DNA from: Thecamonas trahens ATCC 50062
Lineage: Eukaryota > Protista > Apusomonadida
Reading direction: 5' to 3'
DNA length: 64,000 bases
NCBI RefSeq assembly: GCF_000142905.1
Contig: NW_013657620.1
Coordinates: forward strand, 62,001 to 126,000
Shown: positions 15,672-19,407 of the stretch, piece by piece
Position numbering within the stretch: position 1 is the stretch's first letter
Layout: the number at the start of each line of letters is the position of its first letter
Made by a program: the position numbers and the translations under genes
Notes under the pieces: generated by a model
Database searches by the model: none
What the model saw: the letters and a program-made list of their open reading frames with translations, nothing else
What the model was told of the DNA's origin: nothing

Positions 15672-17251
15672 ATGGCAACCGATGTGGCGGCATGCCTTGA
15701 CGCCTTTCACCACGCACTGGCCGCAGACTTTGGTGGCATGCGAGCCACGGCAGAGCAAATGCGCTCAGTTGTAGACATGCCTCCACTCTCTGCAGATGAT
15801 GGTAAGCTTCCATTCCCACTCCCCATGCCCATCCCCCCCCCCCCTTCTCCCTCGCTCTTTCCGTAAATTTCAAATTTTGTGTTCCTTTGGCAACGCGCGC
15901 CACCAGAGCACCTGCTAGCCATGGCGGGCGACTTACGACGACGAGCATGTTGGGGCGGCGATGCGGGTGGGGAACAACAGGCTCGCGTGCTCAAGAGACT
16001 AAGAATGAAGTGACTGCTCGGGTGGGCAAGGTCCAGGAGGCGTGTGCCTCGCTCGCGGGCTCGCTGGAAGACGCGCCGTCGGTGGCCGATGTGGTGGCGG
16101 CGGTGCGGGCGCTGATGGCCGCCAACGCGGCGCAGCTGGCGGCTCTGGCAGGTGGGGACGAGACTGCGTCTGGCAAGTTTGGTGATGTCGGTACGGACAC
16201 TGCTGGCGACGGTGTGGGCTATGGCATGGGCATGCACGAGCTGGACGACGAGCCGACCGGCTGGTCGCCTGTCGCCGACAAGTCCGCCGCCGCCGGCCTC
16301 GACGAGCCGGTTGTCAGCTCTTTGCCAACCCACACTCCACTGACGACCAATACGGCAATGAGGGCCCCGGTTGCTGCGATGGGAAGCCCGGGATCGGCCT
16401 TCCGCACGCCCGGGAAGAAGGCGCCACGGGCAGCCGCGCTGATGGCCGAGAGCGGACTCGCCACGCCGACCCTCGAAGACTTTGGCCTCTCTGCGGCATC
16501 AATGGCAGCACTCTCGCTCTCGCAAAACGCACCACCATCTCAGCTTGAGTATCAGCCGCGGCCTGCGGCCCAGCGGACAGTTGAGCCCGTGGTTCAGACC
16601 AAGCCAGTGGCAGCGACAGTCGCGACGCCTGTAGCGCCGCGCGTCGCTGCGGCCACGCAGGCAGAGCCGCGCGTCCCTGCACCCACACAGGCAAAGCCTG
16701 CCCCAACTGAGAACGAGTGGGACATGCTCGAATCTCCCGAACCGATGGCCATGCCGTCGAGCTTGGCTGCAACCGGAGGCTACGACGAGGCCAAGACGCC
16801 TGCCCGGCCGACGGCAGCTGCGGGCGCCGGCGCCGCTGAGCCGGCGGCCGAGCCGGCAGCGGCACTGGCGCCCAAGACGCCGCTGCTTCAGCGGTGCGCG
16901 GCGCTGGAAGCCAAGACGCCGATGTTTGACCGGCTGTCGATGTCTGAGACCAAGCGGGTGTACCCCGAGGGCCTTGATGTGCTCACGCCGCTCGAGGACG
17001 ACTCTGCTATCCCGGCATACCTCCGGGTGCAGGTCTCGCTCAAGTGCGTCAACTCGACGCTCGAGGAGATTAACCAGCTGCTCGCAGACAAGTTTGAGGC
17101 CGGTGACGAGCCGTTCTTCACCCAGGACGAGCTCCTGGAGCTCGGGCTTCAGCGGTCGCAGATGAAGGCCATCGTCCTCATCCTCGTCAATGTCCGCGCC
17201 GTTGCTTCACGCAAGGTCGGCACCGCCACCCGCTACGTGGTCCGTGTGTAG
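15672..17251 (+). CDS. SKA3: Spindle and kinetochore-associated protein 3; join(15672..15801,15981..17251)
   Basis: N-terminal helical region, TPTLEDFGLS motif, many TP sites, C-terminal IPAYLR...INQLL...FFTQDELLELGL...KAIVLILV...TRYVV domain like plant-type SKA3. The intron GTAAGC(15802)..CAG(15980) keeps frame. Confidence 0.7.
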
Positions 17252-17499
17252 CTGGCAAAGAGATAAACTGTATCATGATCAGCATCAGCCAAACCCGGCC
17301 CTTGGCCCAGCCCGGCCCGTGCCCCCGCCCGACCTCCTCTCCCGCGAAACTCGACCAACTGGCATGACCCCGACCCGACTCACTGGCCCTGGGCAGGGAC
17401 ACAAGCTACGAGCACAAGTCCAAGTCGCGAGAGGCGACACGCGACTGTAGAAGAAGAGTCGGAGGAGGCGCGGACAGGAGAAGGACAAAGAGAGGGGCT

Positions 17500-17883
17500 A
17501 TGTTTGACGACGTGTCGTTTGAGTGGGTTGGCGGCGGATGGATACCTGTGGCCGTCGCTCCGTGAGGCTCGGACAATTGGGTGGTGGCCAAGGTCATTGC
17601 CATGGACATGGCCATCATCGGTCTGCCCATTGTTACTCTGGCAATTATTGTCTGGTCCATGCTGTGGTTTTGCTTCCTCGGGCCAGAGCTCCGTCGTCGG
17701 AAGCGTCTCCGTCGTGAGCGACGTCGTCGCATCCGTGCTGCCCGCACTGCCGCCGATCGCGTTCGAAGCGCTGTCGATGGCGATGGCGATGGCGATGGCG
17801 ACGAGGCCTCTGCTGAACCACGGGTGGCTGCGGCGACAGGCGTGGATACATCTGCTAGGCAGGGGATGCGGCACAGGACATGA
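17500..17883 (+). CDS. Small single-TM protein; candidate selenoprotein (in-frame TGA at 17563-17565) or shorter ORF from ATG 17602
   Basis: MFDDVSFEWVGGGWIPVAVAP-TGA-GSDNWVVAKVIAMDMAIIGLPIVTLAIIVWSMLWFCFLG followed by an Arg-rich stop-transfer segment; same frame on both sides of the TGA. Confidence 0.5.
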
Positions 17884-17930
17884 AAGCGCGCGATGTGGAC
17901 CCAGGGGGAATGGGGTGGGGTGCGGGCAAG

Positions 17931-18018
17931 GTCGTTTCGGATGGCGATGACGCCCAGATGCGCAAGGGCCGACTGCCATGCAGCGGTACCAGCATCTGCG
18001 GCCGAGCAAGGACTACGA
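17931..18018 (+). promoter_or_regulatory. SECIS-like stem-loop in 3' UTR
   Basis: ATGA (17947-50), 10-bp helix GCC-CAGATGC/GCATCTG-C-GGC, unpaired AA (17964-65) 13 nt after ATGA, apical ministem, GA (18004-05) opposite the core; ATTAAA at 18046. Confidence 0.4.
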
Positions 18019-18067
18019 GTCCGTTGGGCTGCTTTGCATCCCCACATTAAAGCAGTGCGCGTGAGGT

Positions 18068-19407
18068 TTACTGGACCGCCGGCGCAGCGGGGTCGAGCTC
18101 GTGGTCAGCCTCGGGCGGAGGGGTGTCGCGGTGGCGGAGCGTCTCGAGGACCGAGAAGCCGAGGATGACGACGGCAATGCCGGCCAGACGGACCGGCGAA
18201 GAGTGGACGGCAGCAGAAGGCTCAATCCAGCCGTGGATGTAGTCGACGAGGACGGTGGTGGGGACGCAGAGCATGTTGGCGATGGCCACAAAGAGCGGTG
18301 ACGAAACGAGGAGGGCGACAAAGACAAAGACGTTGAGCGCCTTGAGCAGGAGCTGCGCAATGAGCGTCCACAGCCAGACCTGGCCACTCGGCGGAAGCTC
18401 GACAGGATGCTTCTGGCCGTACTGCTGGATGAGGAAGCCAGGCGCGAGGACAAAGGCCATGAGGCCCATGAGAGTGACGTAGCCAGTGAGGTACGAGATG
18501 TTGGCGCCGCGAAGAGTCATGTTGAAAAAGACAAGACCCAACGCAAGGAGAAGGCCGGCAAAGGCACAGATGATATCACCGGCAACAGGATTGGGGGCGT
18601 GCGACGAGTCGTGCTCCGCCATTGCAGTCATGGCTGTTCCGCCGAGGCAGAGGACCACTGCCAGCGACTTGCCCCACGTCGCCGACTCGCCCAACAGCAG
18701 CCACGAGAGGCCGTAGACAAAGACAGCAGACGACGAGACAAAGGTGATGGCCGATCCAGGCGAGGTCAGCGCCAGGCCTGCAAACGAAGCAGCGTTGGAG
18801 AGGGCAAACAGCGCCGCAACCCCACCCGAGACACCCGCCAGCTTGGCCATGCTCATCTTCCGAGCCGCCAGCGTAGCTTTCAAGTTCTCCCACAGCGACA
18901 TCTCTCCACCATCCGCCCCACCTACGACTCGCTGGTCCGCTGCGGTCAGCAGCGGCGCTGCCTCGCCTTGACCAAGTCGACCACGATCACAATCACGATC
19001 ACGAGCACGAGCACGATCATCCGCAAGGTGATCATCCGCAAGGTGATCATCCGCAAGGTGATGGCGACGTTGACCACCCATGCGTGACGCAATCATATGG
19101 CGAGGAGATGGAAGCGGATCATATGGCGAGGGGATGGAAGCGGATCAGGGGCAGCAATGGACTTGCCCGTGGAGAGGCATGGCCAGATGAGGTAGACAAG
19201 GGGAGCAGCGAGAGCATTGAGGATGGCATTGATGAATGATTGAAGAAATGGTTGCTTGTAATCGAGTCCGGTCGAGACATGCTTGAGTGCCTGCACATAG
19301 CCCACGTACGACGCCACAATCCCACCTGCAAGTCCCAACTGTACCCATAACCCGTTCCTGCCCTTGCGCTCACGAGTGCTCCCACCAACTCTCTCTGCCT
19401 TTCCCAT
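18068..19407 (-). CDS. DMT-superfamily SLC35F-like transporter (~446 aa; frameshift near 19093-19145)
   Basis: N-terminal part YKQPFLQSFIN with 2 TMs; C-terminal part SNAASFAGLALTSPGSAITFVSSSAVFVYGLSWLLLGE...GDII...SPLFVAIANMLCVP. Frame broken within a 26-bp tandem duplication. Confidence 0.8.

Follow-up and report, generated by a model that had tools for sequence, protein, structure and literature searches.

Like the candidate reported here, SELENOK and SELENOS are small (about 90-190 aa) and cross the membrane with a single helix. Their Sec residue lies in a Gly-containing segment that is disordered and has no CxxU-type redox motif. They are largely confined to Sec forms (PMC7539508). In both families, Sec is found on the cytosolic side of the membrane, at a distance of 1-3 residues from the C-terminus. 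Surveys of algal selenoproteomes distinguish 42 families, which include SELENOK and SELENOS as well as MSP and "Hypo" (PMC7539508). MSP and the "Hypo" proteins of algae and protists are, as the candidate would be, lineage-restricted selenoproteins of unknown function that were found by the UGA-plus-SECIS logic (PMC7539508). Compared by description, these families differ from the candidate in that they are conserved across species, whereas the candidate is without a detectable relative. New selenoprotein families have been accepted on the basis of cross-species conservation (PMC7539508), and the candidate falls short of this standard. At the RNA level, its hairpin shares with the Rfam family SECIS_1 (RF00031) the character of a eukaryotic kink-turn stem-loop in the 3' UTR.

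The locus was analyzed within a window of 64,000 nucleotides of Thecamonas trahens ATCC 50062 (contig NW_013657620.1, positions 62,001 to 126,000), and positions are given in the numbering of this window. We assign a probability of roughly 0.6 to the reading of 17500-18007 (+) as an unannotated single-exon selenoprotein gene, an orphan coding for a membrane protein of 127 residues. The features on which this reading is based are collected in Table 1. The start codon, the 21 codons that follow from it, the in-frame TGA and the 105 further codons with a transmembrane helix and an Arg-rich segment were all found at the positions given in the first-pass annotation.

Table 1. Coordinates of the features of the candidate selenoprotein locus and of example SECIS elements of T. 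trahens.
Feature	Position	Strand	Basis or remark
ATG (17500-17502) and 21 N-terminal codons (MFDDVSFEWVGGGWIPVAVAP)	17500-17562	+	proposed start
In-frame TGA, proposed Sec codon, residue 22	17563-17565	+	sequence reading
105 sense codons after the TGA, alternative start ATG 17602 included	17566-17880	+	translation
Predicted single transmembrane helix, about residues 37-60	17608-17679	+	Kyte-Doolittle
Arg-rich stop-transfer segment RRRKRLRRERRRRIR	17692-17736	+	translation
(Asp-Gly) repeat inside the low-complexity C-terminal tail	17776-17802	+	translation
Terminator TGA	17881-17883	+	sequence reading
SECIS-like type II stem-loop	17947-18007	+	fold and local consensus
Core AUGA	17947-17950	+	followed by C 17951
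Helix II, 10 bp	17952-17961 with 17992-18002	+	C17999 bulged
5' internal loop GCAA	17962-17965	+	unpaired AA at 17964-17965
Apical stem-loop	17966-17990	+	fold
C18003, GA 18004-18005, G18006 (GC after GA)	18003-18007	+	3' core
Natural variant C to T directly 5' of the SECIS GA	18003	+	ENA contig k141_516502; sole SNP in the hairpin
ATTAAA hexamer	18047-18052	+	present; unsupported as a signal
Examples of the T. trahens SECIS consensus	L017:2246-2305 (SelK); L042 (C86:5576-5641, -); L008:2529-2595; L010:2652-2716		

The reading frame comprises 127 codons in total and is absent from the annotation. The stop that precedes ATG 17500 in this frame is a TGA near 17365, and the interval between them contains no in-frame ATG; GTG 17581 may also act as the start of the protein. 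The N-terminal segment of the product is short and acidic, and around the putative Sec22 there is no Cys and no adjacent redox motif. The 19-residue Kyte-Doolittle maximum amounts to 2.42, a value reached by 3.5% of the open frames of 90-200 aa in the window. The hydrophobic run WVVAKVIAMDMAIIGLPIVTLAIIVWSMLWFCFLG begins before Met 17602, and hydrophobic residues reach up to W27. By the positive-inside rule, the Arg-rich segment would impose an N-out/C-in topology. In contrast to SELENOK and SELENOS, as the first-pass annotation had pointed out, the proposed Sec (residue 22 of 127) precedes the transmembrane helix, and it is predicted to be extracytoplasmic. The candidate shows neither a match to Pfam SelK_SelG nor sequence similarity to these proteins.

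The coding character of the frame was assessed with a codon log-odds model trained on the long ORFs of the window. The 21 codons before the TGA scored +7.5 bits, the best value of the six frames, the 12 that separate the TGA from ATG 17602 scored +8.1 bits, and the transmembrane part scored +18.3 bits. The candidate frame ranked first of six in every sub-segment through the end of the transmembrane helix. The low-complexity tail gave -7.8 bits, and the candidate frame was not the best of six there. Both flanks (17275-17499 and 17884-18051) had a non-coding look, with negative scores in all or nearly all frames. These data favour a coding signal before as well as after the TGA, the segments being short and the evidence weak.

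The same scores bear on the explanation that there is no gene at all, and that 17252-18067 represents the overlapping 3' ends of the convergent genes AMSG_10540 and AMSG_12364, where the described features coincide in DNA of 65% GC. Several frames are indeed open across the interval on both strands, as GC-rich open frames commonly are here. The candidate frame itself is free of TAA and TAG for more than 860 nt, is unannotated and without relatives, and has a negative codon score over its C-terminal 60 codons. We nevertheless regard this explanation as improbable, because this frame outranks the five others and its positive codon scores are limited to 17500-17700, because a hydrophobic window of transmembrane grade is rare among chance ORFs (3.5%), and because the hairpin passes a structure test (see below) otherwise passed only by real or very probably real SECIS elements.

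Another alternative is that an ordinary, Sec-free membrane protein of 93 aa is translated from ATG 17602, that 17500-17565 is a uORF or 5' UTR, and that the hairpin has arisen by chance. The Kozak context of ATG 17602 is good (GCCATGG), the TGA is not surrounded by a redox motif, and the uORF would end 36 nt before the main ATG, which is a common arrangement. Against this stand the 33 codons located 5' of ATG 17602, which are coding-like in the same frame. With the TGA spanned, they scored +15.6 bits, a value matched by 2.2% of non-coding and 24% of coding windows when TAA/TAG-free windows from 3'-UTR-type sequence were used as the non-coding null. The codon scores, together with the hydrophobic run that extends 5' of Met 17602, thus favour translation across the TGA.

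Apusomonads are a sister lineage of Opisthokonta. The T. trahens ATCC 50062 assembly (28.7 Mb, about 63% GC) contains tRNA-Sec (74.4 bits), SepSecS (285 bits) and no fewer than 13 selenoprotein genes. Four GPx-like, two Rdx-family (SelW/SelT-like) and three deiodinase-like genes have a TGA in frame at the catalytic position, and another Rdx locus, the third, comes with a SECIS of its own. In addition, SelO ends with ...VVTUSS, SelU carries GUxxC, and a SelK gene with a SECIS is present. Based on tRNA-Sec, SepSecS and the many genes with an in-frame TGA, we conclude that T. trahens decodes Sec, as the reading of the first-pass annotation requires. The SECIS elements of the organism were recovered with an AUGA...AA...GA fold filter applied downstream of the validated genes, and then with bootstrapped covariance models. 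This yielded ten SECIS elements that belong to recognised families (GPx, DI, SelO, SelU, SelK, Rdx/SelW). Their consensus begins with C-(A/C)UGA-C-G and a helix II of 10-11 bp; the 5' internal loop is YCAA (4 nt) and leads into an apical stem, and on the 3' side one unpaired C is followed by the return strand and then C-CGA-(G/C)C. In four of about 15 T. trahens SECIS elements, CUGA takes the place of the AUGA core. The consensus is tight and lineage-specific.

The candidate hairpin can be written as G-AUGA-C-G[CCCAGAUGC]-GCAA-[apical]-A-[GCAUCUG-C-GGC]-C-GA-GC. Its inner MFE is -27.9 kcal/mol, with 10 pairs in helix II and an inner length of 53 nt. It resembles the validated T. trahens SECIS elements in AUGA-C-G, the 10-bp helix II, the AA located 13 nt after AUGA, the NCAA loop, the apical stem, the C-CGA-GC, the inner length and the start 66 nt past the stop. 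Its helix, composed of 3 bp, a 1-nt 3' bulge and 7 bp, is the same as that of the SelW SECIS. Both the sequence and the fold bear out the earlier description of the hairpin, with ATGA-C, the 10-bp helix, the AA, the apical stem and C-GA-G in their places. The MFE fold of 17900-18060 (-74.4 kcal/mol, z = -2.77 relative to shuffles) contains this helix as well as the enclosing pairing of 17915-17927 with 18031-18045 that had been reported with it. The assignment to the type II SECIS geometry agrees with the architecture of the organism's own validated elements. The CGAG core and the 38-nt AA-to-GA spacer had been called atypical; both turned out to be the norm in T. trahens SECIS elements.

The hairpin departs from the validated elements at two near-invariant bases. 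The base before AUGA is G. Of the 15 SECIS elements and candidates examined, 14 show C at this place and one shows A; among false motif matches, G is the most frequent base there. In the 3' internal loop, the hairpin has A at the position of a near-invariant C. The natural variant at 18003 is uninformative, because U occupies that position in two other SECIS candidates as well; the equivalent base is C in most local SECIS elements (14/15 by one count). The ATTAAA downstream of the hairpin is present, as the first-pass annotation had noted, and its interpretation as a poly(A) signal did not hold. No AATAAA, ATTAAA or close variant was found within 112-200 nt after 11 other T. trahens SECIS elements, and the hexamer was therefore given no weight.

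Covariance models were built from a single validated SECIS (R1), from six (R2) and from eight (R3). The candidate scored 10.0 bits with R2 and 11.4 bits with R3. Noise reached 15.9 bits in the window in the R2-stage scan and 10.8 bits in the R3 test. Held-out validated SECIS elements obtained 46.4, 41.2, 33.4 and 26.6 bits with R2, and 21.7 bits (GPx) and 12.1 bits (SelW) with R3. None of the models separates the candidate from noise, and both this and the two deviating bases speak for a Sec-free protein with a chance hairpin. The validated elements lie at 21.7-65 bits, in contrast to the 11.4 bits of the candidate, with the exception of SelW at 12.1 bits. The held-out SelW score indicates that a real SECIS can score so low, but only about one in fourteen does. 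The score deficit of the candidate is mainly due to the G before AUGA and the A in the 3' internal loop.

In a whole-genome scan with R3, in which 150 of about 23,600 first-look candidates were scored, the training set and two new elements were recovered. Two high-scoring SECIS elements were observed at G000:C86:5576-5641 (-), with 46.7 bits, and at G000:C30:23914-23977 (-), with 40.6 bits (R3). The Rfam model SECIS_1 (RF00031) gave no match with E<=10 in 17300-18300. It also gave no match genome-wide, including the six loci with bona fide selenoprotein genes. Since it misses every validated T. trahens SECIS, this model is uninformative for the candidate.

To estimate how often such a hairpin is expected by chance, a motif distilled from the validated T. 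trahens SECIS elements (ATGACG-N10-12-CAA-N31-39-CCGA[GC]) was counted in the genome. There were 59 matches, compared with 9 in the reversed control. The matches were subjected to a structure test that asked for the basal G-C pair, 9 or more pairs in helix II, an AA left unpaired, 6 or more pairs in the apical stem and an inner MFE <= -15 kcal/mol. Eight of the 59 passed: two GPx, two DI, SelO, SelU, the element at C4:153611 and the candidate. The seven other than the candidate are real or very probably real. All eight lie in non-coding DNA with no positive-scoring open frame, and 41 of the 51 failing matches are located inside stop-free frames with a positive codon score, i.e. within coding sequence. 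Of 120,000 random genomic segments on which the motif was imposed, 604 (0.5%) passed the test. At this rate, the whole genome should contain about 0.26 false passers, and the roughly 10 non-coding matches about 0.05.

With about 0.05-0.26 chance hairpins expected per genome, and with the candidate's located 66 nt behind the stop of an ORF, a Sec-free product from ATG 17602 is unlikely. A Sec-containing product is probable, because the 3' stem-loop matches the SECIS elements of T. trahens itself. The reading of the locus as a selenoprotein gene is better supported than before, since the hairpin obeys the SECIS rules of the lineage and has the expected place behind a coding-like ORF.

Other hairpins were noted as well. 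The SECIS at C4:153611 (L029:2668-3073 = G000:C4:153267-153672, +) scored 28.7 bits when held out (R3) and follows a small ORF (ATG at about 2688, stop TAG at 2943 of L029) after 66-69 nt. At the upstream exon boundary of this ORF, CAG|GTC-TGA-GTC-TCG-TGC gives a U-x-x-C motif before a hydrophobic helix. The locus is probably an intron-split, unrecognised selenoprotein that is thioredoxin-fold-like; its exon 1 was not found. A motif match at G000:C55:105681-105742 (-), in L098, narrowly fails the structure test on energy alone (-14.3 kcal/mol), with 10 helix-II and 8 apical pairs. It lies in an ambiguous context and is possibly a further SECIS. Two SECIS-like hairpins without a recognised upstream selenoprotein gene were found at C1:412424-412484 and L028:645-706 (L028 = G000:C1:412300-415500, -). 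In one, helix II is made of 8 pairs and the inner MFE is -26.8 kcal/mol; the other has the form AUGA...U-GA-G and scores 17.9 bits (R3).

The geometry of the candidate gene falls within the range of the validated T. trahens genes. The distance from the stop at 17881 to the SECIS core is 66 nt (37-155 nt in the validated genes), and that from TGA 17563 to the core is 384 nt (Sec-UGA to SECIS, 65-599 nt). In two validated genes, the terminator is a TGA as well, located 48 and 91 nt before the SECIS. The Sec-UGA of SelO is decoded at 65 nt from its own SECIS, and for this reason the candidate's terminator UGA, at 66 nt, might be partly recoded. The candidate sits between convergent genes, AMSG_10540 with its TAG at 17251 and the minus-strand AMSG_12364, which is EamA/SLC35F-like and ends at 18068. 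AMSG_10540 was ruled out as the client of the SECIS, as it has a TAG stop and no in-frame TGA in either exon. This gene (window about 15680-17251, +), in which no Pfam domain was found, apparently has two exons, the first starting with MATDVAACLDAF... near 15680 in another frame than the ORF 15887-17251.

It was also considered that the SECIS is real and the gene model is wrong, owing to a spliced upstream exon (possible acceptor at 17521-17522) or another start. Intron-split selenoprotein genes do exist in T. trahens (the GPx gene on C12), the Sec at C4:153611 apparently follows just after an acceptor CAG, and the TGA of the candidate lies within GTGAGG, which is similar to a 5' splice site. 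However, for an intron that starts at 17562, no acceptor ahead of the transmembrane segment is in frame. The sole AG in that stretch, at 17591-17592, would give a 31-nt out-of-frame intron, and removal of the TGA by splicing was therefore rejected. Moreover, 17275-17499 looks non-coding in all frames, and an ATG, a coding-like N-terminus and a stop are already present without splicing. Such a mistaken model is, in our judgement, very improbable.

A word search of 5.8 billion proteins yielded no homologue of the candidate and no self-annotation, and a phmmer search of 1.84 billion representative proteins, in collections from which apusomonad genomes are absent, yielded no homologue either. The sole phmmer match (P0001) was rejected as a repetitive hydrophobic artefact. 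Pfam contained no family for the candidate and gave only a sub-threshold, Vpu-like transmembrane match. As the first-pass annotation had stated, no family could thus be recognised by Pfam, word search or phmmer. A six-frame search of the T. trahens genome revealed no paralogue, an exact 36-mer of the candidate was absent from the JGI metagenomes, and a look-up of the exact product found nothing. In the literature search, no paper joining Thecamonas and selenoproteins and no published selenoproteome was found.

The sole match in the search for synteny in a relative was the ENA contig ERZ27245236 k141_516502, which represents a second strain or sample. It covers 17772-19249 with 99.7% identity over the aligned bases and breaks at 17772 inside the Asp-Gly repeat. 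In the N-terminal part of AMSG_12364, this contig is without a 26-bp tandem duplication (19107-19132) and one 15-nt repeat unit (19015-19029). As the frameshifting 26-bp duplication is missing from a contig of 99.7% identity, it appears to be strain-specific or an assembly artefact.

In the proposed mechanism, translation would start at ATG 17500, the UGA at 17563 would be recoded to Sec by the type II SECIS (17947-18007) in a short 3' UTR, and translation would end at UGA 17881. The product would expose Sec22 on the extracytoplasmic or luminal side, with its Arg-rich, low-complexity tail in the cytosol. For the Sec-protein reading first put forward, the fit of the SECIS, the codon usage and the Sec decoding of the organism speak in favour; the poly(A) argument was lost, and the covariance models leave the hairpin at noise level. 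Insertion of Sec at UGA 17563 is predicted from the sequence. Among redox roles, the most likely would be that of a selenol at the membrane surface that forms a selenenylsulfide with a partner, which is proposed because no resolving Cys is nearby. With slightly better than even odds, the candidate is the founding, species-restricted member of a new class of selenoproteins. This class would be defined by a type III single-pass protein of roughly 127 aa, a lone Sec in a 35-residue extracytoplasmic N-terminal segment and decoding through a variant SECIS (G before AUGA and A in the 3' loop) close to the limit of acceptance by the T. trahens machinery.

That the Rfam SECIS model misses all T. trahens SECIS elements, those with CUGA cores included, matters for the automated annotation of selenoproteins in protists. 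If the selenoprotein reading of 17500-18007 is true, one unannotated gene and a new orphan family would be added to the selenoproteome of T. trahens. Its product would have a topology not described for SelK and SelS, with Sec ahead of the transmembrane helix and on the non-cytosolic side.
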